Assembly: GCA_047495785.1 (NCBI GenBank)
Contig: JBLDXI010000046.1
Coordinates: 62,001-126,000, forward strand
Origin: Lepidodermella squamata
Lineage: Eukaryota > Animalia > Gastrotricha
Direction: 5' to 3'
DNA length: 64,000 bases
Under the pieces are notes generated by a model. It did no database searches. It was not told the DNA's origin and was given only the letters and a program-made list of their open reading frames with translations. Within the stretch, counting starts at the first letter, position 1. Every line of letters begins with the position of its first letter. The translations under genes were made by a program, and so were the position numbers. Shown one piece after another: positions 818 to 51,556 of the stretch.

Positions 818-3800
818 ATGCTTTATCGGTACATTTTAATGGCTGTGCTAAGCTTTTCCATTGTTAAAGCTGATACTCTCAAAATCTTGCTACCTGTCCT
901 ACTTCCAATGACAGGCGACGATCCTCGAAACGGTGAAGGATGCCGAGCTGGCGTTGATGTAGCTATTGATGCTTTCAATGCTAGACGCGCAAAAGACTAC
1001 ACCGTCGAGCCGGTCTACTTGGACGAGGCTGGCGGTGCTCTGCAGGCTGCGAAGCGGCTAGTGGAATTCACGAGGCGTGGCCTAGGCCCATCAGAACAGC
1101 TCGCCCCAGTTGTTGTCGGGCCCTACTTTACCGGTGGATGCAAGGCAGTGGCGACGTTCGTACACCACCTTAATATGGTTCAGGTAATACAGCATGTCTT
1201 TCTTTCAAGGATTCAGTAGGTCCCATAATTAACCGACCAACGACCAAACCCAGGATGTCAAAACTTGAAACGCCTTTTTGCTTAGGGCATCAGGAATTTA
1301 GGGGAGTTTGATACTATGAAGTGATGGTGAAGCCTCAAAATTAAGAATTTAGAGGCAATAGCACCTAAACTCAGTGTGCGAAGTAGGATCCGGGAGCTGG
1401 GGTGTTTTCTACTTGTTTTCTAGGACCCAGCCGAGGGAACCAAAGGGTCCCCCCGTGGTTTTTCCAGCCTTTCTCTGGTTACAGTCCCGGAGCTGGGGTG
1501 TCGCGACACCCCAGCAATCATGTACTTCGCACCTTGCCTAAACTCTTTATCATGGCAAGGGGCAAGGGGCTCGTTCTTGTAACTTGAAAACGCAGCCACC
1601 TTGAAGGGGAGTTTGGGTCTTACTGGATCCACCTCTTGGAAGTTTCTAACTCTTAGGTTTCTGTAAACTTCCTATGAGCATAACTAGGTAGCGAAGTGGC
1701 GTTCTCTGTGGAAAAACTCCAAACTTTCAGTATGTAGCCTCCAAAAATCTTCGATCACCCTGGCAGATTATGAGCATTGCTGTCACGCCAAGCAACCATG
1801 CAACCTGGTCACATGACTTTGGGCAGTTAGAGTCTCTCCAAATTAACCACAAACCACAAGATAACAAAGATCAACATTACAAACGTCCAGGACTTTCAAA
1901 TCCCTTCATTGTGCCGTGGTAATAGGGGGTATCGTACCCCCCCTCCCTAGTCTGAAGCGAAGGTGGAAAACCGCAAAAAACCCCTGAAGGACCTTTCGGT
2001 CCGAGAATTTGGGGGTCTAGTTCAAGGATCTTACTTCGCCTTTATGTTTCGAAGGAGGAACATCGAAGGATAGTGAAAGGATTCGAAGGATTCATTGTTT
2101 CACTCCTATAAACATGACCTTATTTTGCCGACGTTTATTCAAAAGGTTGCCATGAGTTGTGGCGCCCCTGCTATGACAGCACAGCGACGTCTGCTGCCAA
2201 ATTTCTACCGCATTCGTTCCGCTGGCGATATCTCCGTCTTCGCCACGCTCCATCTGATCAAAAATATCGGCAAGTGGCAACGAATCGCGATTCTGACATG
2301 GGCTGGCAACGTCTACAACTACCAAATCGCCTCGATTCTACAACAAGAATCACTGAAACAAAACATTTCAGTGCCATTTTTCGAAATTGCCGCCGATGTG
2401 GATGAAGAAATCCTTACGCATCTTAAAAAATCCGACCTTAGAATTATCGCCTACCCAGTCGCTGAAAATTCCATGATCAACAAGTTTCTCTGCCTGACTT
2501 ATAAAATGGGCATGACCGGACCGCGGTACCTCTTCATCTTATCCTACGTTGGCTATGCTGACCCTGACAGCTTGCCCTTGAAAATTTCAGACGGGTGTAC
2601 GAGAGATATGATAAAAACGCAGTATTTGATCTCGAAATGGACCGGCGGCCAGTTGGAGGCCGATAATGCGACGAGAGTTTCCGAACTCGGCTACAATTTA
2701 ACAACTTTCGATGATCTTTACATCCGCAAAATCGGCTTATCAAAGCAGGTATGTGTTGTCTGAAAATTGTTTTCAAGCAGTAACATTTTCAAAAATTTCA
2801 AAAATTCAAAAAAGTTTGAATCAATTGGAAAATAGGAAAATTTAATTTTTTCAAAATACATAATTCGAAAAGAAAAATGGAAAATTTCGAATTTTAGCCT
2901 GATTTTTCTTCCCATTCAATCCCATTTTCAGGTTTTCACACCCTATTTTCTCTTGGCTATTAAGTTTAATTATACTATTTCTCATTGTTAGAAACCAGCC
3001 GATCATATAAAACGTGTCCTATGCCACGATGCTGCATTAAAAGGCCTTTTAATCCTGGATGATACTCAGAAATCCCTGTTACGCCTCAACATGAGCCTGC
3101 GAGACTACGCGACAGTTCCCCGAGAAATCGCAGCAATAGCTAACCAATCAGCTGCGAAAGTTGCTTACACTGGCCTGAGAGCTGGGTGGCTGCAATATTC
3201 CAGCCGCCTCGAGCTCGATAACGATCCTCAGGTCGTCGTACAGTGGACGCCTGAATACGGCCCGAAAGTCGAATACAAAACAGTTCTGAAGCCGGGCGAT
3301 AAGGAGGATCCTTACTCCTACAGAGCTTACAATTTCGAAATTATCGACCCTGTTAGTTGGAACACAAAAAACGGCGAACCTCCACTGCAGAATCGAACAA
3401 TACTGAGGATTACTGAGGACGTCCCTCTAACCTTCCTATACTCAATGCCAAGTTTAGCAATCGCATCTTTACTGGTCCAAATTATTCTGTCGATTTACTT
3501 TAGGAAGTTTTCCCTCTTAGTTATAACTGGTCTCTTGTTGAACGCATCTTGTATCGCGTTTTCTGTCCCAACATCGATTTCACCGTCTGTGATTTGCGTT
3601 ACTCGCCCTGTTTTCGTTGTGCTATCCTTCGTAATACTTCACATTGTCATAAAGTCCCAGCTTATCAATCTTAAAGGCTCTCAAGGTAGTAGAGCGATTT
3701 ACAAAGCTCATACCGCGACAACAACGTTCCACACAATCGACAATAGGCAGCCGTCTCCTAGAGGCGATAACGTTTTTCTAGAATTACCGCCAACGGTTTC

Positions 3801-4266
3801 GATAAAATCAGCTAAGAAATGCAATAGATATATTGTTATGATACCTGTCATTCTTGATGTTGCAATTCTAATCATTTGGCTGTGTTCCGACCCGGTTAAA
3901 TCTAACATCGCTACATCCTCGCTGCCTGTTTATGATCTAATTTCGGACACACTTCAATTTAGTGAAACTGTTGTTTGCTCGTCTAATAATTATACGGCAT
4001 GGCTATTGACTCTGGCGCTTAGCAACGCCTTGAAGTTGATCTTCGAAGGCGTGTTGGTCTTTTTGATTGGCACATCAACGGCGATGAGGTCTCTGAGTGA
4101 GTTTCGAGCGGCGCGTGTCATTGTTGTTAATAGCGCATCACTGTTTTTCGGATCGTTGCTCCTCATTGTAGCGCTGCAAGCTGCGACAGGCCAGCTCGAG
4201 GCGCTAGCCATTGCGACGTTTCTACTGTCAGGCGTTTTAACATGTGTTTTTGCTCATTTCCGGTAG
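818..4266 (+). CDS. Class C GPCR, GABA-B-receptor-like (Venus flytrap + 7TM), ~747 aa; exons 818-1183, 2146-2748, 2992-4266
   Basis: Signal peptide; ANF/VFT motifs (VVVGP..TGGC, QVAMSCGAPAM..RRLLPNFYR, LCHDAA); GT-AG phase-0 joins keep frame; seven hydrophobic segments with GABA-B-type C..R in TM3 and DVAILIIW...DP in TM4; no Cys-rich domain. Confidence 0.85.
1372..1536. mobile_element. hAT-type MITE in GPCR intron 1
   Basis: TIR CAGTGTGCGAAGTA / TACTTCGCACCTTG; 8-bp TSD CCTAAACT on both sides; further copies at 12633, ~38812 and ~51421. Confidence 0.85.
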
Positions 4267-4636
4267 TTCGATGTGTCAATGGTTTATCTGAAGTCTGAGG
4301 TTAAATATAAAATATAAATCAATTGAAAAATATGATTGTTATCGTATAGCGGCAACCTTGGCAGCTTCCTGTGTGGGGTGCTTATGCTGTTAAAAGACCC
4401 TCGGAGCCTAATTATTCGTGCTGGATGTCAAATCTAACCTCACCAAAGTTTTTATTATTTAATGAAATCTCTTAGATAGATGATTGTAACGATTTTAGCT
4501 CATCATGACTTTGGTTAATTTCCTTCGGCTATGAATAATGAAACACTTCCTCGATGGCTGTGACAAAGTACAGCATGGCTCACAAATGCACCGCACACGA
4601 AATTCTCAGGGTATATATAGCCGTCTCAGACAATCA

Positions 4637-5667
4637 TCACACAAGCTGACAAGTCTCAAAGCCCGTAACGCCATATGCGATGCCGTCGGTATCAAACGCT
4701 AAACCATCCTGCACGATAATCCCGCAACACTTTTGGTAGGTTTCAGCAACGAAAGTATTAGGCGGTGCTGTGGTCTAAACAAGAAAATAACTATTACAAT
4801 GAGCAAACATTTCAGTCCAAAATCTACCGGTCCAGAGGTGACAGCAACACCGTCCGGATAATATGCGGTGTAAGGGAAGCGAATACATTTTCCATTCCGG
4901 GTATTAGCACGGTTACCGTTTACTTTGTACGCCTTATCGGTGTCGACTGTACCGATGCAAGCCAATACAGGTGGAGAGCCAGGAACAATCTCGTATAGCA
5001 GAGAATTAGTTCCTTGCGCTGCTGTGCAACATTCAGCGAAAGAGCTGAAAGTTTTCTTCGGAGCCGTCGATGCCTGATGAAAGGAAACCGTCTGTTAAAT
5101 TTCAGTTGAATCAGTTAATTCTTACAGTTGTTCCTGTTAAAAGAACAGAATCACATGCTCCAGCATTCGCTGTGCAGAATGGCACATTCGGCTTTGTGAT
5201 TGTTGCATCACCGCCTTGCGTCGTGGTTATTAAACACAGCTTGTAGGTGAGCTGATGGTGAATGAAAATTCACGGGCGATTAACGTTTCAGAAAATGGCT
5301 ATGAATTCAAGCTTACAGGGCTCGCGCAGGTTTGTCCTGACGGGCATTGAGTTGCTGACGTTGCGATGCAATTATTCGACGATTTATCGCAAACATTGGC
5401 GGCAGGCGTGCAGGTTTGGCCGCTCGGGCACGAAGATGAAGCAGCTTTTGTCACACAGCTGTTCGCCGTTGTATCGCATACAACACAGGTAGATCCAGGG
5501 ATACAGGCGTTGGCTGTAGCATAACAGGCCTGGCCATTAGGACAGGTTCCGGGATATTCCGTGACTGTTGCTGACCTCGGGCAAGACGTTGTCGAGGCAG
5601 GGCACGCAGTGACAGTGGCACAGACGGTGGCCAGTAGAGCGAAGGCTAAAGTTTCAAGTTTTGACAT
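4637..5667 (-). CDS. Secreted Cys/Thr/Pro-rich protein, paralogue A (~286 aa); exons 5667-5317, 5251-5126, 5073-4828, 4774-4637
   Basis: Signal peptide ending ..A|CP; three 52-65 nt phase-0 GT-AG introns; shared family Cys frame (FC.ANAGAC, CC, CIRFP, CC, terminal TC). Confidence 0.85.
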
Positions 5668-6194
5668 AATTCTCAAGTAATTACGTCGTAAGCAGCTTCA
5701 TCCCGTTAAAATTATCTGTTTTTTTTCCTCCGAGAATGGCCGACGAAATTCTGCCAGGGCATGCTCCCGTTCTGGTGCCGTATATTGTTGCGCACGGCCG
5801 CTGCACCTGGTCGCATTCTGAGGTTGGCGTCGAGAAAACTTGGTGGAAAAGTACGCATCATAATATATAGGAGTCGTATATGCTGCAAAATGATCTTCAA
5901 CTGCGCGCGGCGGCATCTATCTAGTGCTAATGTGTTGATGTTATTATATCAAAAACAACACCAGCGGCATTGATACGACGGATATGTATAACATCGCGTT
6001 GCCAGAACTAGCAATGGCTTGGATATCTATTTAACGTATCAGAAGTGGTCGGCCTGACGATCGTAATACATGCTGTGAGCGGCCAAGCTAAGGAAAGAAA
6101 CTTAACAACTGGGGCTGCAAAATTAAGACGAACGCGAGTTTTACTAATGGCACTGCTATTGCGATATCTGATCTATATCTGATTTTCTAGAGTT

Positions 6195-6980
6195 TTGTAT
6201 TCATTGTCGCGATCGCGTTCCGGCCATCATAGCAGCCTGGTCCGGCCGACGATTTCCAATGCGATATATGCGGCGGAAAATTCAAGAACAACCACGGTCT
6301 CTGAACAAGCAACGAGGGAAGAAGGCACAATGGTGCTTGTTAGAGACGTGATTTACGACGTCGATTTCAACGTCGATATCACACCGCAAACCGATGAACA
6401 ACCCATAGAGATGATAGTTTTAAGGTGGAGGAAACTGGCCAGCCTACCCCTCATGCCTTCGAACGGCTGGAGGTAAAACGACATCTCCGAGTTGACCGCA
6501 GACAGCCTAATTGGTTTGGTTTCTCTAAACTCGACGAGCCTGATTCCGACGTCTATCTCAACAAGCGGGATAACGCCACCGAGGTGGAGCATGCAGCTAT
6601 TTCGGCCGAAAACAATGATCCCGTCACCTACGAGCAAGCCATGGCAAGTCCTGATCGTCTTCAATGGCAAAGAGCTGTCGAGGAGGAAATGAGAGCGCTA
6701 AGACGAAACAATACCTTTGCGGTAGTGCCACGTCCGAAAGACAAGAAGGTCCTCGGTAGTCGTTTGTATTCAAACGTAAACGTGACCGAAACGGCCAGGT
6801 AGTCACCTGGAAAGCGTGTTTTGTATGTCAAGGTCACAGACAGCGCCCCGGAGTCCCCGGAATCTCCTACGACATCGACCATGTGTATGCTGCTGTTGCG
6901 AAAACTACGACCGTCCGACTGGTACTAGCCATCGCAGCTATGAATTCCTGGCCCGTGTACCAACTCGACGTGTGTTCGGC
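6195..6980 (+). mobile_element. Ty1/copia LTR retrotransposon pol relic (RT N-terminal part), frameshifted
   Basis: DPVTYEQAMASPDRLQWQRAVEEEMRALRRNNTF..VPRPKDKKVLGSR; downstream frame VAKTTTVRLVLAIAAMNSWPVYQLDV. Confidence 0.85.
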
Positions 6981-12632: not shown

Positions 12633-12799
12633 CAGGGTGCGAAGTACAGGGGTGCTGGGGAGTCGCCGACACCCCAGCTCCGGGACTCCAACCAGAGGAA
12701 GGCTGGAAAAACCACAGGGGGGACCCTTTGGTTTCTTCGGCTCGGTCCTAGAAAACAAGTACAAAGCACCTCAGCTCCCGGATCCTACTTCGCACACTG
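12633..12799. mobile_element. hAT-type MITE (same family as 1372-1536, opposite orientation)
   Basis: TIRs CAGGGTGCGAAGTA / TACTTCGCACACTG; 8-bp TSD CTTGGCGC. Confidence 0.9.
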
Positions 12800-25473: not shown

Positions 25474-27906
25474 CAGTGATTTGGATTTGCTGTTTTTCAT
25501 ACAAACCAAACAAAATGAGCTCTAAACCAATACCAAAACCAAAACTGAACCTGTCAGTTCAAAACAAAACCCAAACAAAACTCAAGTTTTAGCAAAACCA
25601 TTACAACACCCAGGTGAATTATAACATTTTTATTTCACATATTTTTCAACGAACTATTTACAAAATAGTGATTCAGTCATTAATCGCAAAAATTAAAGTT
25701 AATTAGTGGCGTTTAAGTTCATCGCCGATAGCTGACCGGGCAACTCGTTGGCAATTTGCAGGTATCGAAAGTTGCGGGCGAGCAGAACGTCGCGACGTAG
25801 TTTTTCCGGCGTCTGTCGAGCTTTGTGGGCAGCATCGCAGTAGCCTGATGTCGAAAAAACTCGTTCGACCTCGCAGCAACTAGCCGGAATCGAGAAAAGC
25901 AGTTGCGCGTATCGATGCAGTCGAGGGAACATCTGCTGATTTTCCCGCCAGAAGGCGTAGCAAGCGGAGCAATTGCCGAATGAAATACGGTTAGCAGCGC
26001 CAGGGCCAGGCAGAGTAGGCTCAGGTCGAGGATCGGTGAGGTTCGCATATTGCAGCAATTCCTTCTCGACCAGGCTAGCCGGCGTTGACGTTGGCGTGAC
26101 TCGTGATGATACGATTTTCGGCCGCTTGGTCGGAACGGCATTTGCCTCGAGTTGGGCAGGCTCGACCGGAACGTCGTTAAGTCGAGTTCGGACGTCAGCT
26201 GGCATTTGGCTGATCAACGCCTTGGCCTTGCCATAGGACTGGCCGCTCAGATCGCGCAACCGAGGATCTAGGTAGGCGGCAAGCAGGAGCCAAGCGTCCT
26301 TCAGCTGTTCTGCGAACCGAGTCTCAAGGCCGGTCGCCAGGTCCAGGCGAAGACGCCGTAAATCATTACTCTGAAATTCGGTGTCGTCACGCAGGTAATT
26401 GATGGAATGGCGAATTGCGACGACGACAATCCCGCAGTGAGCGTCAGCCACCTTAAAATTAGATAAAAATCAATTTGAGTAAAATAAAGTACATCATTGC
26501 AATGTATACCTCTAAATTCAGGACCAGGTCGCTGATAACAGTCAAAATTTCGAGAAGCGTACCAATTAGCCGCAGGTCGGCGTCCGTGAGCTTGTGAGGA
26601 AGACGAGGTAAAGCCGGGTTGGCGCCGGACAGCTGAGCGAGAGACGGCGCGACACCGGCAGCAGCTTCGCCTTCAAACGTAGCATCGCCAATGAACTCTT
26701 CAACCTCTTCGACCACGGCAGATCCGGACAAGTCAACGTCGCCTTGCCGAACTGAGGCTTCGAGTAGCCGACCAGCTTTCTTGATGTTCGCTGTTGTGTC
26801 GGTAGTCGCCTTGAGCAAATATGGCGCCGGTTTTTCAATCGGTAGATGCGACAGAATCGAAACCAGGCTGTCGTAGAATCGTTGCTCGATATTCTCGGCG
26901 TTGTGAGTAACTAAAAATCAAAGGCTTTATAAAGATATCGCCCTGAATCGCTAATTTTTTACCTGGAAATGAGAGATGCTCGGCCGTAAATCGGCGACGA
27001 ACCATGGATGCAGACATAAACTCGATATTGATGGCGAGAAACGAATGCGACGCTCGACTCGACCAAATGTCAGCCATCATACTGAAGCCAATCGCCTCGC
27101 CGAGAGAAGCATAAGCCGGAATCATTAGCCTATCAATGAGTTCAACCTGGCGGTTGGTAACCGTCCTCTGGTCCGGCATTGTCAGCGCCATGTTCCTGGA
27201 TGAGCAACGCAGTGTCCAAAGCCGAATATTTTCGGGCCGGTTCGAGGTTGGCGACGTGATAGGCTCGTACTGAACAGCGGCTTCGAGCGCCAAGCAGTCG
27301 AGAAAATCGAGGTTGACTTCCAGTTGCCCAACTTCAGGTATTGGTTGATTATGGCGTACCAGGTCGAGTTGTGTTCGGTAGACGTCGCCGTGGCTCTCCC
27401 TGAGGTGCCGTAGTAACGGTGACGCCAGTGAAACAAGCTGTGATTTGTAGACCTTTTGACACAGTTTGCACCGGTAGACATGAGTCGTGGCATGGTCATG
27501 GTTGACGTACGCGAAATTGGCGGCCGCGATTGGGTTGCTCAGAACAGGTGGCTGGTCTGGATGCGGATTCGGGCCAAAAACCGGCTCGATGATGGGCAAA
27601 TCACCATCCTCCATGAACAACTGATTGAATGTAGCTGTAAAAAGTGAAAGCTCGCTGATTGATACCTTCCTCCCTGAATCGGGCCACTTTATACCCGTCC
27701 AAACCCAATGTAACAGAAAGAAATAATACAATTGAACGCTTTCTTACGCAATACCATCAAAGGTTTTTATTTTCGCAACAAACAAACTGTATTGTTTTCT
27801 ATCTTTAAGCCTTGGTTCAGTTTTCGTTTTCGTTTTCACTGATCATCAGAAAAACAGGGTAAAACCAAAACCATACAAAAGTTTTGAATTCAAAACCAAA
27901 TCACTG
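25474..27906 (-). mobile_element. hAT DNA transposon with both ends intact
   Basis: TIR CAGTGATTTGG at both ends; perfect 8-bp TSD AACGCGAG; subterminal AAAACC repeats. Confidence 0.95.
25699..27757 (-). CDS. hAT transposase (BED finger, DDE, dimerisation domain), ~610 aa spliced; exons 27757-27748 (tentative), 27634-26963, 26910-26510, 26451-25699
   Basis: CKLC..LLRHLRESH; MADIWSS; THNAENI; TTDTTANI; AAYLDPR; FW....FPRL....LFSIPASCCEVERVFS. Confidence 0.85.
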
Positions 27907-28269: not shown

Positions 28270-28390
28270 GTACTCATGGTAGTAGTCCATGATTTGCAGC
28301 TCGCCAATGCCCGTATTTCCAGCCACATCCTCGCCAGATTTTGTCGATTCGTTGTAAACAGCCCAAGATTCGAGGGATATTTTGTAAGTA
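28270..28390 (-). pseudogene. Fragment duplicated from prolyl 4-hydroxylase exon 1
   Basis: Near-identical to ~34080-34190 (AGNTGIGELQIMDYYH). Confidence 0.85.
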
Positions 28391-28451
28391 TTTTGCTCGA
28401 GCAGAGTGTGGCGAGTTAACTGGTACCGACGTGATTATTGTGGCTATCGAA

Positions 28452-31113: not shown

Positions 31114-34100
31114 TCATCTGAACTTCAACCAATCCGGTAGTTCAAAGTCTGTTAAATCAAAATCCTGCTCCATCGTCAATCCGCACTTTTTATGATGAAA
31201 CTGGCCACGGAATCGAAACCATTTGTTAGCCACCCATTTCTCGCCCCTGATCACCGGGCACCCGCCGTGAAGCGTCCGTTGGTCGATCGTCTCGTTGCGG
31301 TGAACATTGTACCAAATCAAACCAGCATTCTTCGCCGCATCGATGCGAAACCCAAGCTTAGCAAACACCGTCCCTCCACCCTCTTCGACATGGTTCAGGT
31401 ACAGCAGTAACGTCGCAATCCTATCGCCTAAATGCGACCCGGCTACCGAGGTTAGGTAGTCCCAATGCGGGGCGTAGTGGCCCCCGATCGGGTAGTACCC
31501 AACCTGGTACATCTCACACCCGCCATCGCCGTCAAACGCGTTCATCCCAGTCACGGCCTCAATGTGTCTCGTTAACGAGGTCATTTTGCGCGTCACGCTC
31601 GACTCGAGCCATGCGGTGCGCGCGCGCCGTTGGTGCGGCTCGAAATCCGACCCGCCCGTCTTGTAATTAACCACCCCAGCGTCGTTCATCTTCTCCGCAG
31701 CTTCGCTACGCAACAGCCCAGCTTGGTCGTCCGTCAATAGGTCGTAGACTATAACAGCTATCGGGTCCAGGTTCAGAATCTCCTCCTTAATCGGGCCTAG
31801 GATGAAGTATGGATGGTTGCCACGCCGGTTGTACCTGCAGTAAAGGTTCGGATTCCTCGATAGCTTTTCCGTATTTTCAGCACATGCGTCGTATTGGCGA
31901 GTTTTCGTTAGCTCTTTCGCCGTTTCGATTTGCTTTTCGATCGGCAGCTTTTCGATTGAGTTGCCAAGGTCTTTCAGCAGTTTTGATACGCGTTCTTGTT
32001 CGTAGTAACGCCGGTTGTCTTCGAGGATTTTACGCGTTTCACTGCTGATTGATGACCGCGTGAGTTCGATTGTTACCATTTCAAGGGCTTCGGAGTAGTT
32101 TTTCAGGTAGCCAGCTGCGGCTTTTATGCCGTCTATTATCGATAGCTCTGTTATTCCATCAACTGCTGCAATTGACAAATAAGATGAATTTACTTGCAAG
32201 CATTTTTGCGTTTTTTAAGGCTATATTGAGGAAACCAATGGAAATTTGGAAAAATCCAGGAAAAATCGAATATTGAAATTTCGAGAAATGTGAAAAATTC
32301 GACTTTTCAATTTCAATTTCAATTTTTTTTTAATTTTCAAAATTTTGCGAACAGCCTCAAATATTCCAATTAGGGTCATCATTTTTGATGAATCATCGAA
32401 ACACTATCAACAGGGCGCACTCGTTTCAAAAACGCGAAAATGGAAGATGCGGAAATCTGGCTAGATCAATTTGTCTGAAACGAGGTTAAATAGATTTACC
32501 AGTTCAGCCGGGTGGACTAGTACAACGCGAGTGGGGCCAAGCTACTTCATGGATCAGCCCTTGTGAAATAACCCGGAGAAAATACTCAATATTGAGAGAA
32601 ATCGGAAAAAAGTGTCCATAACGGGGACGATTTCAAATGAATTTATTTCAAGCGTGGGCCAACTGGTAATTATGAAGGATTAAAAATTAAAAACTTCCAT
32701 TTCTTAGGGTTTTTCAAAGATGCTGAACAAGATTCCATAAAAAAAGCCAGGATTCAAAATTTTTGGGGAGCAACTCGATGATTCATCAAAAATTATGACC
32801 TAAAATAATTTATTTTTACAAATTTGTGAGATAAATAATTCGATAATTGGCCCTTAAGGCTGACAAGTTCAGTAAATTCCAACCTCTAATTTCAATTTAA
32901 AATGTGTGTCAATTTAGTGCACCCCCTAAATGTTGGGTTCAAGCGCGAAATTTGAGAGACTACAGCATTAGATTTTACCAAAATACTTTACGCTTTTCGA
33001 GTTTCATTATAGAATCTATATTTTTCGTTATCTTGCCTGACTTATAGATCTAGCCTTGATATTACGCTACGAGTGTTCAGTTTACATGTTTACAGGTTTG
33101 GCCTGCTGAGGCATTATCGATCCCAAGCATTGATTTGACTGATTGATTGATTGATTGATTTGACAAAGGCTTGGAACACGACATTAATTATTTACCTACT
33201 TTACTTTTAAGATTATTATAGCCAAAACTATGAGAATCCCAAGCCCTGGTAGGGGAGGGGCATCCGTAGATCAAGAATTGAAAAACCCAAAATCGCAAAG
33301 GATTGGGAAAATTTGGGACGCGAAAAAGGGTTGGAACCTCATTTTAAGTGGTGCAAATATTAGGGTAAGTTCAAATTTCTAAATTTGAGTTTAATTACAA
33401 AATTTAATATCCAATCAACCTTCAATTTCGTGAAATTAAAATTGAAAGTTCATAGTTAATCGCCGAAAATTCTCCTGAATTTGATAGTCATTTAAAATTT
33501 AAATTTAAAATTTAAATTTAAAATCTGGCTTAATCCTGAACAGAATAAATATTGGAAAAATCCGCAATTTCCATTTTGAATCATTTTGAATCCATTTCGA
33601 AAACAAAACTCTCTCTAGAATAATTCCAATTTTTTTGAATTTTTTTAAATTTCAAAAATTCAATTAAATTTCTCAAATATTGAAAATAATTTAAAATCAA
33701 GTTTAATTTATTACCTTCGGCTTTAGAATCGGCTTTAGTTGCATTGAACACCTTCCACGCCTTGTAGTAGTACGTCCGAGCCATCGAATAATTCATACTA
33801 ATCGCAAACCGATTCGCCAAGCTGAACAGCCCGCCAACTTCCGTCGGCTCAACATCGACAATAATCTCTTCAAACGCTCCAAAAGCCGCCGCCGCCTCAT
33901 CCTTCTCCTCAACAGGCGGATCTTCAATGCCACTCAACTGATCGACGTACTCCGAGTAGGATTTAACACTCAAGCCGAGGCGATTCCGATCCTCAGCCCG
34001 TAAATTCAGTCGAGCCAACATGTCCCGAACTACGCTCAACGCCTCGTTATAACGGCGTATTTTATAAGCGCAATAATGATAGTAGTCCATGATTTGCAGC

Positions 34101-34321
34101 TCGCCAATTCCCGTATTTCCAGCAACATCCTCGCCAGATTTTGTCGATTCGTTGTAGACAGCCCAAGATTCGCGGAATATTTTGTAAGCATTTTTGTAGT
34201 CCTGCTGCTGGTAAATTTCATAGCCGTGTCGAAACAACTCAGCTGCTCGGCCGGGTTCGAAATTTTGTGAGCCGGTGGAAAAATTGACAAAAATAATTAT
34301 GAGTAAAAAATAATGTAGCAT
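31114..34321 (-). CDS. Prolyl 4-hydroxylase alpha-subunit-like protein (~552 aa); exons 34321-33715, 32165-31114
   Basis: Signal peptide; LYCRY...HPYFILGPIKEE; YPIGGHYAPHWD (HxD); RIATLLLYLNHVEEGGGTVF; TLHGGCPVIRGEKWVANKW; phase-1 GT-AG join. Confidence 0.92.
32372..32801. mobile_element. MITE in the P4H intron
   Basis: ggtcatcatttttgatgaatcatcga / tcgatgattcatcaaaaattatgacc inverted pair. Confidence 0.7.
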
Positions 34322-36515: not shown

Positions 36516-38565
36516 ATGGCAACAGAGGTGAGTAAAATCAATATTATCGATAACTGAGAATTTACAGATGACTTTGTAATTTTTTCCAGATTTTCACCGA
36601 TGGCCTCATCGACAAAATTCACCTGATCAACTTTCGGAGACATTCAAACTGCGTCCTACCTGAATTATCAAACCACAAAATTGTTCAGATCACAGGTTCA
36701 TCGGCTAGTAAGTTCTCTACTACAGCAACAATAATCGCGAAAAATATCAAAAATTTGGACAGCGTTAAATTGTATAAAATAAAAAAATATTTCTGGCTCA
36801 AAAATTCTCAAATTTTCAGCAAAAATGGGTTGCGTGGTTGATAATTTTACTAAAATTTTTGATAATTTTTCTATATTTTTTTAATATTTTTTGCTAATTT
36901 TGAACTCTCATAAGAAAATTGGAAAACTGAAAATTTGAAATTTTTGAAAACTCTAAAATTCATAATTTTAATTCAATTTTTACCATAATTTTTTCCAGCC
37001 GGGAAAAGTGCGATAATCGAAGCGGTTATGTTCGCATTCGGTCGTCATTTCGACCACCCGGTTGACCTAATTAAAACCGGCAAAACATTCGCCGAGGTCG
37101 CCGTCACGCTGTGCAACACAACGCAACACTTGGGCGCATTCGAGCGTGAAATATTCGGCGAGTCAATCACCATCCGGCGCCGCATCACACGGCCACCGGC
37201 TAGCAACCACCCTGCGTCTATGCGCCAACCGACGTGCAATGTGCCTATCGCGATTGGCACGGAGGAGGATGAATTTTCGATTTGCAGCGCGAGTAAACTT
37301 GTGGTTTACAAGACTGAAACTGCGCTCAAGCGGGTGTTGCAATTTTTCAAAATCGACATCGAGAATCCGCTGATGGCTATGACGAAGGAGCTGCTGTGGC
37401 ATAAACTCAGCCCGAATGCTCATCATAACAGCAAGGGGCTGTATGAAATGTTCCTCGCTAGTATTGGCCTAGTTAACGCAACCGAAGAGGAAATGAAAAG
37501 GTAAGGGACATTCGTATAATTTTAAACTTTTTTCAACTTGAATCGGTGCTGTCTAAAATTTGAAATTTAAAAATTGAAATTTGAAATTCCAATTTGAAGT
37601 TAAAATTAAAATTCAAAGGAAATATTTTTCAAATTTTGAGTTTTGAATTTTTGACTTTTTAACATTTCTCAAAAATGTCCCTTTTTCTATAATCTACAGT
37701 GAGAATAATTGAAAAAACTCGAAATTTCATAAATACTGAATTTCAATTCCAATTACTAAACAATTTCAATTTAAATAATTTTTAATGATTTTCAATAATT
37801 TTGAAAATTTTGAAATTTCGAAATTCCCAATTAAAAATTAAAAAAATATTTCAAGAAATTTGAATTTTTTCACAGGCAAGATTACGTTATTCTATGCAAA
37901 GCTGTTGAAATCGAGAAAAAATTCCGGTTAATGAATCCGACTCATCACATTCGTTTCGACCACGAAACCCGTGCCCTCTCAATCGACGTTCACGCCTCGC
38001 CGAACGACAGCCTGGCCAACGATGAAGACCGAGTTCTTATCGGCATTTCACTCATGCTATCGCTGTGGCAACTGTCAGATTTGCCCGTTAAATTCGCCGA
38101 TGATTTGGACGCATTTTTCGACGATGCTGGCGAGCGTGAGCGCGTTGTAGCGCTCATGGAACGAGTTCATGAGTACAGCACGGATTCTGGCCAGCTGTTT
38201 ATCATCTCTAAGAAACGCGTCATTTCGCCCCCAGTCGTAAGTTCAATCGAAGATTCCCAAATTTTGTGAAAAATTCAGAAATATTCCAATTTTTTTATTA
38301 GCCACAAAATTTTCTCGAAAATGATTTTTTATGATTTTTCCAAAAATAAAAAAATGTCCCATTATTTTCAAAAATAATTCAAAAATTAATCAAATAAATT
38401 TGTTATCGATTTTTTTAATTTTCTGAATTTTTCCGAATTTTTCAATATTCGCTGAATAATTGAATTATTTTTCAATAGTGTCGCGACCATCAAGTAATGA
38501 TTTTGGAGCTTCGAAGTGGCCGATACAATAATTCCGAGCGCAAAGGAGCCGCCATTGAGGCCTGA
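36516..38565 (+). CDS. Head-only SMC6-like ABC-ATPase-fold protein (~359 aa); exons 36516-36527, 36590-36707, 36999-37500, 37876-38236, 38479-38565
   Basis: GLIDKIHLINFRRH; Walker A ITGSSATGKSAII formed across intron 2; IKTG...AEVAVTLCN..AF..EIFGESITIRRRI; IDIENP; C-head LMLSLWQ...P..FADDLDAFFD and QLFIIS; exon lengths sum to 1080 nt with an open frame. Confidence 0.8.
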
Positions 38566-38811
38566 AATTTGACGCTCGCAATCCTAATTAATGAGGCAAT
38601 AAAAAAACTTTCCATTTTGTTCTCATCCTCTCAGCCTCATTCTTGGCTCATTTTCTATTATTACCTCGATTACAATTGTTTGTTGCTTTTATTCGGAATT
38701 ATTTGGAATAAAATCGCATTTGATATTTTTCGAGAGAAACTCAAAAACGTCGCGCAACATAATTTAAAGCGTCGCGCAAGGGCACATTTCTTGTCGCGCT
38801 TTGTTTAATTT

Positions 38812-38927
38812 GTCGCGACACCCCAGCTCCGGGATTCCAAACAGAGGAAGGCTGAAAAAACCACAGGGCTAGGTGCTGGAAACTTGCTAGAAAACACCTC
38901 AGCTTCCGGATCCTAATTCGCACACTG
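38812..38927. mobile_element. Partial hAT-type MITE (1372 family)
   Basis: gtcgcgacaccccagctccggga...ggatcctaattcgcacactg. Confidence 0.75.
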
Positions 38928-39924: not shown

Positions 39925-42398
39925 TCACTCCTCAAAATTGAGAAATCGAGTCAGACAGATAGGCAGAGACAGCTGATCTATGGCAGTTTTTCTTGCTTCC
40001 GCACCCATTGGAAGTCGATTGAGAATCGAAGCTCGGCAAATGAGTTGCAATTTCAGCGGATAAGCTTCGGTTACGGCCTTTTCAAGGGCGATCGCACTGA
40101 CATAACTGATCGCGAAGGGCCGATTATTTTCGTCGATTCCTGTCTGATTAGCAACTTGGATCGAGCTGAGAAATTTCGAAACATTTAGTCCAGTTGTTTT
40201 CCGGGCAGAAATCAAGGTGGATATTGCTGTATTTCCGATAGGAGAAGATGCTACAAGACCTAAACAAAAATTTGCAATTGTATTAAGTTAGGTTATGCGA
40301 TATTTTGTGATTTCGGCTATTTTGTTTATAGATCGATACTGAAACCTCTCCTGGGCTTAAATTTCGGCTGCATCGTACCCCAAGGTATAAAGAAAAACGA
40401 TAGATGTTGGGTTCCAAGACGGTTGATATCGGAAAAATCACTGATTTGTAAAATCGATAACTGGAATCGATATCGGCCTAAATTTAGTCCTAGAACCTAA
40501 ATTTTGGTTTTGCAAAAAAAATCTTTATTTTTGAAAAAAAGTTGAAAAATATTTTAAATTTCAAAATATATTTGAAAAATGAAATAATTTTTTTATTTGA
40601 ATTAATTATATTCGAAAAATAAGCTCCAATAATTCCCAATTTACAATCGGCGAAAGATGACTAGTTTAGGGTAATTTCAAAGCTTAAGTTACCTGCAATT
40701 AGCCTTAGGTGAGCGTCGCCAATCTCGCCTTCGAACGGGTCTTGAGTTAACCTAGCACCAGCCCGAATCAGCGGCAAAACAGCGCCTTGCAATATGGCCG
40801 AAACCAGCCTGCCGTGATTTCTCTCCGACACCCGCAGCCGCCAGTCTTGCTCACCTTCGTTATTCGGCGCCGCCATATCAACAATGAGCGCGTCGAGCGG
40901 CGAAACCGGGCCGATAATGACGCGTTTCCAGCGTAGAATAACAGCAGGGTGACACAACACACCGACTGGGGTCATTATGACTAGGTTTTTAGCGGCTTCG
41001 CAGCTGCAAACAGCTAAATGGTGTAGGAAATGAAGCGGCGTAGCTTCGCTTAATTTTTCTTTGGCCGTCAAATCGGCGCCGTGTTTCACCAAAAGCCGCA
41101 AACAATCAATCATTTGCACATCGGAATCAACACTAAATTAACAATTGCGAAAATGGTTAATCAAATTTTGAATTTTTTCGAATAAATATTTTGAAAAAAT
41201 ATTTCTCAGAATTTCAAAATTATTTTGAAAATTTTCAAAAAAAAATCAAAATTCAAAATTAAAATGTTCGAATATTTCTAAATTTTTTGGCAAATAGACC
41301 ACTTTTGAAAAACAATCACAAGTTGATCAAACAATGTTTTCTAAAATCAAAAAATGGAAAAAATTGAAATTTTGAATTTTGAAATAATGGAATATTTCTG
41401 ATTTTTTTCGATTTTTCATTGTTTATACCTTGATGGATCAGGTGCCCAGTTGTAAAATCCGCACATTATGGGCAGGCTCTCCAACGCGTTGCCGCAATTG
41501 GTCAATGCCGCATTTGGCAGTGCGCCAAAATCCAGTAGGATGCGCACACCGTCGACGTAGTGCGACCGAAGCGCGCAAAATAGAAGCGATGAAACAATGC
41601 AATGAGGCACGATGTTCCTTTGCCGCTCCAACTCGAGCTTCAGGCCGATTATGTCATGCCCGTTTAATAGGCACCAGAGCAGAATTTCGAGACGGCCGTC
41701 GAATGATGAAGAACCTCCGTGTTCCGACTGATAATGGCGGTGGCGTTTTAATGGCGAGACAAAACTTGAAAAATATGGAAAAATAACAGATTATTATTCT
41801 ATACGAAAATGAAAAAATTGAAATAAATATAAAAATTGTTGAAAAATTCTGAAAATTATAAATCGATAATTTTTTAATTTAAATTTTTTGAAAAATTGAA
41901 ATTGAAAATAAAATTGTATAAATTCGAATTTTTTGGATTTTTATCGGTTCGGAAAAATATTCTAGAAAATTCAACGCTTTTTTACCCGGTAGCTGATCTG
42001 AATTCGAAAGCCAGTCGACGGTAAATTGTTCGATTCGATTCTTCCTGGCCATCTCTTCGCCTCGCATTGAGTCGACCTTGTTGCCTCACCGAGGCCATTA
42101 ACACCTGGGCAAACGGCATTGCCATCGCCGCGGTCTCCAGCACGATAAATCGATTTCGAATTCGAAAATCAGTCAATTCAATACCACTAGAATGAGCACC
42201 CCTGCGAACATTCGGCCGACCATCGGGTATCATTATGGAGTAATTTCGGTGTTTGAGCCATGCCGAATTTCTTGCGGCATTTTTCGCCACACCAACAAGC
42301 TGGTCGAAGTAGGTCGGCGAGGCGAGCGGGCAGTCGGTATTTGCGCAAACCACCTGTTGATGATAGCCGGGTGCTAACCAATGAAAATTAACTGACAT
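39925..42398 (-). CDS. Ankyrin-repeat and SOCS-box protein (ASB-like, ~507 aa; start uncertain); exons 42398-41986, 41764-41429, 41132-40693, 40259-39925
   Basis: VDGVRILLDFGALPN, CLRLLVKHGADL...TPLH, LIRAGA; C-terminal SOCS box PLKLQLICRASI...IDQLSLPICLTRFL; splice phases consistent. Confidence 0.8.
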
Positions 42399-44972: not shown

Positions 44973-47900
44973 CCCTTTAGCTACCGGACCGACTAAGACC
45001 GAATGTGTTAACTCGTGATATTTTTTCCAAAAAATGTATAAACACGTCTCTAGATCCGAGTTTACTCACTTTTGGCGGTGAAAAGTTTTGAAAACCAAAA
45101 GCTCGAGAATATTGCCAACCAACCCGAGTTAACGCGTTCGTGCAAAATATAATCACGTTATACTTGCTTATCAAGTGATAAATGGGTTTCCAACACCTTG
45201 GTAGCTACCACAAATCACTTGATTACTCACGGTCGACAAACGAGGCCGATTTTCAGAATTTTTTCAAAAATCAAGGTGAACTCTGAAAATTCCAGGGAAA
45301 ATCCTGGGGCTTCATATCAGTATCCAGCGGCTACCTGTATTTTTTCATCAATTTATGAGCTCACCTTGATTTTCTATAAATTATGTAAAAGAGGCCTATA
45401 CCGTAACGCGCCCTAAATTTGGACAACCCAAATTTGGACACTTTGAGCTTTAGCCCCAAATATCAATTTGTGCATAACTGATAAAAATGTAGAAATTTCA
45501 CTGAAAAATAGCTCCTTCCATGGGCTTTCCAACGGTACCAAATTTGCCAATACTTTCATGTACTACCGATTTGCGAAAAATAGCCGAAGCTCGATCACTC
45601 GGAAAGGTGTTTTGGGACCCCCCTAGCCAAACGTAGGGTGTGAACGGTTGGGGCTGAAATTTTTTTTGCACATACAAATTTAGCTAAACTAAATCCTGTA
45701 AAAAAATCTCGGCAGAAGTACAAGCCAATTTTGATACAGGTGACTTTGATTTTAGCCTCTAAATTTGGACACTTTCAATGATATTTTTATCTCTATGCTT
45801 ATGCAAACGAAATAACATAACATAACATAACATAACATTTTCTTTATTGTTCAGCACTTTTGACATTAAAAGAACAGTAAAAAACAAAATTAGAAAAAAC
45901 AACAAAAAGGCGTGCTGAAAATAAAAATCACTCCGGTGTACACACCCTGCCGGACAGGTCACGGTGGTGACCTGGCAAGCAGAGCGCGTGTCGGAGGAGG
46001 ACCAGTCTAGGGGACCGATCCTAGTCAACCCGAAATCATTTTTCATCAGTAATACAAAATATGCAAAAACCCTCGAGAAGAATCATATTCATCACCCCAG
46101 ACTATGAATTTTCAGCCTCCACTCATTTCTGTCCTTCGCTAGATCATCTGCATCCTCTAAATTTTGAATTCCCACCCGCCCCAAATTTTTCTTAATACAG
46201 TCGAGCCACCTTAGCTTAGGTCTGCCTCTAGGCCGTTTCCAACCCTCCGGCACGTTCCAATACCGTACTCGGTGGGTTAGCCGTTTGGGGTCCATGCGAG
46301 CAACATGGCCGTACCACCTAAGTTGATGTCTTGCTACTATCGAAGATAATTTTTGAGTTTCACATTTCTCTCTAATATAATCATTCCTAACTCTGTCTCT
46401 CAGAGTGACACCGCAAATGCTACGTAGGCATCGCATCTGACAAACGTTCAGTCGCCGTTCATCCTCACTGGTCATCGTCCAATTTTCACCCCCAAATTTC
46501 GCAACCGGTTCTACTGTACCTCGAAGACACTTCATTTTTACGCTAATAGGAATAGATTTATTTCCAAAAATATATTTTTTCAAGGCACCGAAAGCTTTGC
46601 AGCTTTTCTCTATTCTGGCCCTGATGTCGCTTTTTGAAGCTCCATCTGAGGTAATTATACTACCTAAATATGTGAAGCTACTAACTTCTTCCAGTCGTTC
46701 ATTGTAAATAATAAAAGGCTCAACAATTTCATCTCCTTTGTTAATAACCATGAATTTGGTTTTTGGTACATTTATTTTGAGCCCTAGACTCTGGCAAGCC
46801 TCAACAAAAATATCGATAAGAAGTTGCATGTCGTTCCTATGCATGGCTAACAGCCCAGTATCGTCAGCAAAAGCCAAAATATTGAGCCACTCTTCGTCAG
46901 TGAGCGGTACTCCGCACTTTTCTAACTTAACTCTCTGGCATACAACGTTGAAGACGCAAATAAATAACAACGGTGATAAAGGGCAGCCCTGTCTGAGCCC
47001 TTTTGTGACCCTGAAAGGCTCGCAAGCAACACCACCAACCCTAACCGTTGCTATGCTGTCTCTGTACAAGGCCTTTATGTTTTCGATGAGATTTTGTTCT
47101 ACTCCCAGTCCCTCTAGCGCTTTCCACACTTCTTCGCGGTCAACAAAGTCGTAGGCTTTCTCCCAAACCCCTTTCTCCCGAGCAAACGAAATGTATGCTT
47201 TTTGTCAGTTTTTGAAAAAAATGGCAACGCATTGATGGAACCTTGGAATTAGCTTAATGACTCCCGGCCTAGGCTATGCTTTCATGATTTTGGCTAGAGA
47301 GCATAGAGAATAAGAATGAATCCGAATACAAATCCGACGGCGCCCAATCTTTAATTAAACAGGTGAACAGCAGGTACCATGGGACAAATGACAGTTCACT
47401 TCCGGTAAAAAATATCAATAGTTCAGCGATAAAGAAACTCCATGACTCATTCAAACCTCAACCCATGGTTTAACCTCAAACTGATATACCTCCGTCTACT
47501 TTCTAAGAGACATTTTCACCTGGTTTATCATAGTTTTGAGAAGATTCATGGTTCATTAACGGCATTAAGAGCCTGGTGTATAATTGGTATTGCGCACATC
47601 TGCATTAAATCTGACGATGAGTGAATCCTATCGGTTTTAGTTTCAAGCGGCTACAAAATTCGCCTTAAAAAACACGAGAAAAATTGCGCAACGGGGAATA
47701 AAATGTGTGTAAGGTCAAATTAGCATATGCAAATGAGGTGTCCAAATTTTGGACGAGATGTCCAAATTTAGAGGTTTCTTTACCTAATTTTTATTTGCGA
47801 GTGATCTTTGGACCCATTTTTCGAATAAATAACGGGGTTAACAGATGACCTTTAGGGTGAACACGGGCCAAAAGTGTAACGTGTTTGTTCATGTTATGCA

Positions 47901-51420: not shown

Positions 51421-51556
51421 AGTGCGAAGTACAGGGGTGTTGCGACACCCCAGCTCCTTGAATCCAACCAAAAGAAGGCTGAAAAACCACAGGGAGGAAC
51501 CCTTTGGTTTCTTCGGCTAGAAAAAACCTCAGCCCCGGATCCTACTTCGCACACAG
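51421..51556. mobile_element. hAT-type MITE (1372 family), degenerate
   Basis: gtgcgaagtacagggg...ggatcctacttcgcacac. Confidence 0.8.

Follow-up and report, generated by a model that had tools for sequence, protein, structure and literature searches.

It was found that a five-exon gene lies on the + strand of the window (the whole 64-kb stretch of DNA analysed here), from position 36516 to position 38565. All features described below are on this strand. Splicing of the five exons gives a coding sequence of 1080 nt, which encodes 359 amino acid residues and ends with a stop codon. Exon 1 (36516..36527) encodes MATE, with the A of the ATG at 36516 and a GT donor at 36528. Exon 2 (36590..36707) encodes the N-terminal beta strands of an ATPase head and the first half of the Walker A motif; its product aligns with the N-terminus of SMC6 (G.I..I.L.NF..H), and cDNA contigs are present on this exon. 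The Walker A motif (P-loop), GSSATGKS at residues 40-47 (36695..37009), is interrupted by intron 2 (36708-36998). The remainder of the N-terminal head half is encoded by exon 3 (36999..37500) and the C-terminal head half by exon 4 (37876..38236), while exon 5 (38479..38565) encodes the last head strand, a C-terminal GAAIEA motif (38545-38562), and the stop codon. The 3′ UTR (38566..38712) has AATAAA sequences at 38598-38603 and 38707-38712. Introns 1-4 are 62, 291, 375, and 242 nt in length, and all of them are GT..AG introns with T-rich acceptors; the GC content of introns 2-4 is 20-22%. No Rfam match was found in the 64-kb window. A preliminary description of this DNA, made from the sequence alone, had proposed an open frame of 359 residues in five exons with the Walker A motif split by intron 2, and both were reproduced in this study.

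The two head halves are joined by a short linker of 40 residues (residues 196-235; 37454..37948), with GLYEMF as the final block of the N-head before it and IRFDHE as the opening block of the C-head after it. This linker stands in for about 700 residues of the arms and hinge of SMC6. It contains intron 3 (37501-37875). Since this intron has only 375 nt (20% GC) within the linker, it cannot encode the arms. In a second haplotype present in the DNA run, 216 nt of intron 3 are absent. Is the arm or hinge sequence encoded nearby? When the 64-kb window was searched by tblastn with three full-length SMC6 proteins, no coding sequence for the arms or hinge was found, and the sole match below E=0.5 was the N-head of P0012 on exon 3. 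No Pfam match to SMC_hinge was found in the gene. Thus, the passage of about 30-40 residues from the N-head to the C-head in the preliminary description proved to be correct, as did its statement that a 375-nt AT-rich intron is too small to hold the missing arm. The gene product is referred to as mini-SMC6 below.

With the product of exon 3 as the query, 1.84 billion representative proteins were searched exhaustively by phmmer (E <= 0.001). There were six matches: a relative (P0001), four canonical SMC6 N-heads or fragments, and an unrelated repeat protein (P0005). A word-index search with the relative as a query recovered only the relative itself. P0001 was found on three independent metagenome contigs, which are 99.4-99.5% identical to each other. 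The relative's gene consists of two exons and encodes 333 amino acid residues. Its single intron lies at the same codon and in the same phase as intron 2 of the window gene, inside the Walker A motif. From the GKT of this motif through the stop codon, the relative is encoded by one uninterrupted exon, which includes the junction between the N-head and the C-head, and this is the case on all three contigs. The window protein and the relative share 45% identity and have the GAAIEA C-terminus in common. No synteny was found between the 64-kb window and the relative's contig. These results clearly indicate that the head-only architecture exists in a second species. Since the head-to-head junction lies within one exon of that species, the architecture is a property of the gene family and not an artefact of assembly.

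It may still be asked whether the gene is an artefact or a dying gene, either a misassembly in which the exons for the arms were lost or an SMC6 fragment in decay. The Pfam SMC_N scores are far under the gathering threshold, and no contig was seen spanning the entire gene, which would favour such a reading. The loss of coiled-coil exons through misassembly, a case which the preliminary description had raised against itself, is at odds with the uninterrupted exon of the relative on three contigs and with the depth of the DNA run, which is unbroken across the locus. Decay of the gene is at odds with the reading frame, which is open through five exons here and through two exons in the relative. 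The pattern of nucleotide differences also argues against decay. The DNA run contains a second haplotype or copy, and all 18 of the listed differences in exons 2 and 4 were classified. Seventeen of them are synonymous and one is non-synonymous (a conservative Leu/Met replacement); given 244 synonymous and 833 non-synonymous sites, the probability of such a synonymous excess is about 1.5e-10. The three contigs of the relative show six differences from one another, every one of them synonymous (6:0). These counts indicate that the gene is under purifying selection. The comparison between the two species gave a pS of 0.83 and a pN of 0.37; with its synonymous sites saturated, this comparison does not yield a usable dN/dS.

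The cDNA contigs on the exons likewise speak against an artefact or a dying gene. In the X1 run, contigs lie on exons 2-5 and the 3′ UTR, while introns 2 and 4 are at zero depth; the signal in intron 3 consists solely of low-complexity repeats with loose ends. One contig starts exactly at 38479, the first position of exon 5, and another covers 38570-38678 in the 3′ UTR. One loose end in this run is the reverse complement of what I take to be a SMART-type cDNA primer, and X1 is thus regarded as a library of amplified cDNA. In X1, fold-back joints span 394 nt over intron 2 and 339 nt over intron 4, while all the others span 47-113 nt. When introns 2 and 4 are removed, the same two joints become 103 and 97 nt, as for a spliced template. 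Among the X1 contigs at the locus, none was seen crossing the junction of exons 3 and 4. In summary, the gene is real, transcribed, and selectively maintained, and it encodes a head-only SMC6 paralogue. The reading as a misassembly or a decaying fragment is strongly disfavoured, and hardly any weight was left on it. The intact, intron-retaining paralogue of the preliminary description is upheld by the open frame and by the synonymous excess in both species.

To which SMC class does the head belong? In the Pfam analysis, SMC_N was below the threshold in both head halves (weak for exon 3, and E 0.007 for exon 4). In the PDB sequence searches, the best match of exon 3 (N-head) was human SMC6 (9lwi) with E 0.038, and that of exon 4 (C-head) was the same protein with E 0.02 at residues 958-1029. 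The relative gave a phmmer match to human SMC6 9lwi with E 8e-8, in which both the N-head (81-224) and the C-head (950-1019) were aligned. None of the other ABC/SMC-like ATPase classes (Rad50, RecF, RecN, and SMC1-5) was found at E < 0.1 in the PDB sequence searches with both halves and the relative. A profile made from the A2 alignment used only 119 positions against the PDB, and single-sequence phmmer was more informative. In a local BLASTP search, the spliced window protein matched P0002, an SMC6 protein of 1144 amino acid residues, at 54-248 and 1009-1099. Thus, the protein consists of the N-terminal and C-terminal halves of an SMC6-type ABC-ATPase head with a linker of about 40 residues between them.

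The fold was assessed with an AlphaFold2 model of 289 residues of the relative (without the first 44 residues). A four-row alignment gave a pLDDT of 36.6, and a usable model (pLDDT 76.7, pTM 0.74) was obtained only once SMC6 rows, including full-length SMC6 proteins, had been added. Because the alignment for this model is made of SMC6 sequences, the model is biased towards SMC6, and the fold does not count as evidence separate from the sequence matches. In a Foldseek search with the model, yeast Smc6 heads were top-ranked (E 1.6e-8). By VIA-align, the model superposes on yeast Smc6 heads with Z 15.5-19.5 and an rmsd of about 3.1 A over about 250 residues, while all other SMC/Rad50 heads scored Z 15.3 or less. 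The SMC6 clusters of the ESM Atlas showed a TM of 0.78 to the model, and feature searches of the same atlas yielded nothing more specific than Rad50/SMC-type clusters. The linker is modelled as two helices, each about 13 residues long, which are a stub of the coiled-coil neck. The preliminary description had assigned the gene to SMC6 and had called for a comparison with SMC5, SMC6, and RAD50. SMC6 is the only class matched by sequence in the PDB and the best match by fold for the relative's model, which supports the assignment.

The phylogenetic analysis was less decisive. The mini-SMC6 branch is 4.0 substitutions per site from the SMC6 clade, and the tree cannot place it. When mini-SMC6 was constrained to group with the SMC6 proteins P0002 and P0009, the cost was 1.5 log-likelihood units (p-AU 0.39). 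Both mini-SMC6 proteins have a Pro-rich insert in the N-head (37193..37261 in the window), whose position is shared only with P0002 and P0009 among the SMC6 proteins in the alignment. These data are compatible with a possible origin of mini-SMC6 together with P0002 and P0009, a grouping that was not rejected. P0002 and P0009 group with mite SMC6 with 90/77 support. A 100/99 clade consists of P0002, P0009, the SMC6 of Brevipalpus obovatus, and P0022, and it adjoins insect SMC6.

The state of the ATPase site was examined by aligning both mini-SMC6 proteins with ten SMC6 proteins. The Walker A pattern GxxxxGK[ST] is kept in both species, as GSSATGKS here and GLPLCGKT in the relative. None of the four x residues is the same in the two species, and where GxxGxGK has its middle Gly, the window protein has Ala and the relative has Leu. 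Owing to these variable positions and the lost Gly, nucleotide binding is not assured. The Asp residues of Walker B and the D-loop are kept in both species. At the segment corresponding to the T(S/N)RG arginine finger of SMC6, the loop is shortened (37034..37075) by a deletion of 5-6 residues, which is the same in the relative. At the Q-loop position (37379..37390), the window protein has MTKE where SMC6 has LTQE, so that Gln is replaced by Lys; the relative has His there. The remnant of the LSGGE signature (38012..38029), which is LANDED in one alignment and a gap in another, has no Ser-Gly-Gly, and in the relative this stretch is deleted outright. Walker B (38087..38104) reads VKFADD in both species, compared with FKILDE in SMC6, and the catalytic Glu is thus replaced by Asp. 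In summary, the arginine-finger loop, the Q-loop Gln, the signature, and the catalytic Glu are lost in both species. From the mechanism of ABC/SMC heads, such a site might bind nucleotide but would be unable to hydrolyse it or to complete the site of a partner. The LANDED and ADD (for LDE) readings of the preliminary description were reproduced, with the reservation on the alignment of LANDED, and the decay of the ATPase site goes further than was described there, as the Q-loop Gln and the arginine-finger loop are lost too.

A head-only SMC protein with a dead ATPase site is not without precedent. SMCL-1 (C44C10.4) of C. elegans is an SMC-like protein which has no hinge or coils, an intact Walker A motif, an imperfect signature, and a Walker B Glu replaced by Asp (Chao et al. 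2017, PMC5373644). It binds the SMC subunits of condensin and behaves as a negative regulator, and it was proposed to bind SMC heads and to block the ATPase cycle (PMC5373644). Homologues of SMCL-1 were found only in a subset of Caenorhabditis, and it was predicted that other lineages may have independently evolved similar partial SMC proteins (PMC5373644). The SMC class from which SMCL-1 derives is not stated in PMC5373644 or in the other literature found. My literature searches found no head-only eukaryotic SMC protein besides SMCL-1 and no head-only SMC6. SMCL-1 is not mentioned in the preliminary description.

Is mini-SMC6 a member of the SMCL-1 family, as an orthologue or a paralogue, and hence a condensin regulator? 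The resemblance is considerable. Like SMCL-1, mini-SMC6 consists of head halves only, with neither hinge nor coiled coil, and has a P-loop, a damaged signature, and a Walker B Glu changed to Asp. The SMCL-1-like proteins are 305-639 aa in length and retain the GG of the signature (PMC5373644), and mini-SMC6 is likewise short (359 aa here and 333 aa in the relative), with only a two-helix stub in the relative's model. The introns have nematode-like T-rich ..CAG acceptors. On the other hand, the N-head phmmer search of 1.84 billion representatives (E <= 0.001) contained no SMCL-1-like protein, which argues against a close relationship to SMCL-1. The PHI-BLAST pattern of the family requires the signature G-G, 20 residues, and hhhhD followed by a residue other than Glu (PMC5373644). 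Mini-SMC6 has no GG in the signature and a spacing of 21 residues, and of this pattern it shows just the last element, a Walker B without Glu. The GxxGxGK(S/T) form of the P-loop also fails through the loss of the middle Gly, and only GxxxxGK[ST] is found in both mini-SMC6 proteins. In addition, the Q-loop Gln and the arginine-finger loop, losses that go beyond those of SMCL-1, are missing in mini-SMC6. Neither mini-SMC6 nor a neighbouring oxygenase gene has a named close relative among its matches, and neither matches any named Caenorhabditis protein; the closest full-length SMC6 proteins are those grouping with mite SMC6 (90/77) within the 100/99 clade. Mini-SMC6 is recognisably derived from SMC6; the comparison with SMCL-1 was made by the published criteria. 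Membership of the SMCL-1 family is thus considered very unlikely. Judged from sequence features, SMCL-1 appears to be the closest precedent: a head-only, ATPase-dead SMC was already known, and what seems to be new is a form derived from SMC6.

The SMC5/6 complex restricts viral and episomal DNA. A viral or mobile-element gene that mimics the SMC6 head as a counter-defence against the restriction of extrachromosomal DNA by SMC5/6 might be imagined, and the lower-GC stretch at the locus and the reverse-transcriptase ORFs some kilobases away in both species would suit such a gene. A mobile-element or viral context around the gene was looked for, and no sign of it was found: the gene is not flanked by terminal or long repeats, a single 47-nt pair with 85% identity being all that was seen, and no viral genes lie beside mini-SMC6. 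Furthermore, the introns are of the host type, and the position of one intron is conserved between the species. An origin as a counter-defence gene therefore appears far-fetched.

Compared with canonical SMC6 (human 9lwi, yeast 7tve_D, P0002, and P0009), both head halves of mini-SMC6 align and fold alike, and the position of the Pro-rich N-head insert is shared through P0002 and P0009. In contrast, mini-SMC6 is without about 700 residues of arms and hinge and without the signature, catalytic Glu, Q-loop Gln, and arginine-finger segment, and it lies on a very long branch. There are other proteins in which only a part of an SMC protein is found. The eukaryotic protein SMCHD1, cited in PMC5373644, likewise keeps just one SMC module, and its role is regulatory rather than that of a ring subunit. 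Unlike mini-SMC6, SMCHD1 keeps the hinge and not the head, and it has a GHKL ATPase. Engineered heads, such as head-only, Walker B EQ, or signature-mutant heads (SMC1A-HD of the 8ro series and 5h68), fold alone with short coiled-coil stubs. These are laboratory constructs, whereas mini-SMC6 is a natural conserved gene in which several motifs have been lost at once. It has been argued that hydrolysis-dead SMC heads can trap or poison their partners (PMC5373644).

The very long branch (4.0 substitutions per site to the SMC6 clade) and the loss of every engagement motif also raise another interpretation, in which the head has been neofunctionalised outside SMC complexes, for example as a nucleotide- or DNA-binding adaptor in another pathway. 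The new conserved GAAIEA C-terminus and strongly conserved private blocks such as VYKTETALKR, which are not SMC6 features, would fit this interpretation. However, the overall head fold is kept (Z 19.5 for the relative's model), and SMCL-1, the one head-only SMC protein to have been characterised, retains binding to SMC heads (PMC5373644). A function outside SMC complexes is thus judged unlikely, though less so than the viral or SMCL-1 origins.

I favour the interpretation that mini-SMC6 is a head-only, ATPase-degenerate SMC6 paralogue acting as a non-catalytic binder of SMC heads, and this statement as a whole seems reasonably likely. The architecture, the second species, the state of the motifs, and the selective constraint can be stated with high confidence; the mechanism is tentative and falls somewhat short of an even chance. 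The protein may still bind nucleotide without hydrolysing it. Having no signature motif, it would be unable to complete the ATP site of a partner, and having no hinge, it would neither dimerise through a hinge nor form a ring. Its likeliest role would be to bind, stoichiometrically and without catalysis, an SMC head or subunits associated with the head, tuning or blocking the ATPase cycle of that complex, as was proposed for SMCL-1 and condensin. The protein thus probably regulates an SMC complex and is not one of the ring subunits. Its descent makes the SMC5 head the first candidate for the target, with the Nse proteins of SMC5/6 as the alternative. Since SMCL-1 binds condensin, descent from SMC6 does not fix the partner.

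In SMC5/6, the N-terminus of the kleisin (Nse4) binds the coiled-coil neck of Smc6. The preliminary description had suggested kleisin binding as one possible role of the protein. Since the neck is cut to two helices of about 13 residues in the model, canonical binding of Nse4 by mini-SMC6 is predicted to be less likely, and this version of the earlier idea loses ground.

A broader speculation is that, in animals, head-only SMC proteins unable to hydrolyse ATP arose on more than one occasion and serve as endogenous dominant-negative regulators. In that case, mini-SMC6 would be a natural inhibitor or 'cap' made from SMC6, the first of its kind, and would engage the head of SMC5 (or Nse subunits) via the retained P-loop such that both composite ATP sites are dead. 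This speculation is doubtful at present, and I rank it below the mechanism proposed above. How the ATPase cycles of SMC proteins are regulated is a central question in the field, and few natural proteins are inhibitors of SMC heads. Mini-SMC6 was built from SMC6 and has decayed further than SMCL-1, and yet strong purifying selection acts on it in at least two species. With a second case that is apparently independent, the head-only pseudo-ATPase would look like a recurrent evolutionary solution. The protein may also serve as a compact natural tool (333-359 aa) to probe the engagement of SMC5/6 heads. An endogenous modulator would likewise be of interest to those who study viral and episomal DNA, on which SMC5/6 acts as a restriction factor. 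If the broader speculation is true, this lineage would have a tunable brake on SMC5/6 in repair or in the silencing of extrachromosomal DNA.

The mini-SMC6 gene of the window has four introns, whereas two metagenome contigs that carry SMC6-related genes are intron-poor. On one of them, a 122-kb scaffold (L005), the canonical full-length SMC6 protein P0009 is encoded by a 1146-aa ORF without introns (positions 3001-6441). The genes adjoining it are single ORFs too, as would be expected of an animal whose genome is poor in introns. The contig carrying the relative of the window protein (L001) is similarly intron-poor.

Either high heterozygosity or duplication marks the mini-SMC6 locus. The DNA run (X2) contains a second haplotype from which 216 nt within intron 3 (at window 37581-37798) are absent, and the exons differ by about 7% between haplotypes or copies, with nearly all of the differences synonymous. 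In the cDNA run (X1), a loose end at window 38544 is the reverse complement of a SMART-type template-switch primer. Many of the contigs of this run are fold-back chimeras, a pattern suggesting that the cDNA was amplified from a tiny sample.

Just 3′ of the mini-SMC6 gene, an approximately 120-nt dispersed repeat (window 38811-38927) is probably a small non-autonomous element; further copies, with 72-79% identity, occur at 1372-1508, 12662-12799, and 51438-51554. A separate 119-nt repeat pair (28276-28394 and 34076-34194) has 94% identity. Two minus-strand ORFs near the gene, one with a hAT dimerisation domain (25699-26451) and the other with a reverse-transcriptase domain (RVT_1; 46092-47129), are transposon remnants. 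Also on the minus strand, a single-exon ORF of 360 aa (31114-32199) encodes a prolyl-hydroxylase-like 2OG-Fe(II) oxygenase, whose sole relative above 40% identity is a metagenome protein. Downstream of the mini-SMC6 gene, a minus-strand ORF ending in a SOCS box (39925-40215; E 3e-6) probably represents a single exon of some larger gene.

The window protein (38545-38562) and its relative (L001 7298-7315) end in the same C-terminal hexapeptide, GAAIEA, which was not present in canonical SMC6 in an alignment with ten SMC6 proteins. GAAIEA may be a short binding motif of the mini-SMC6 proteins.
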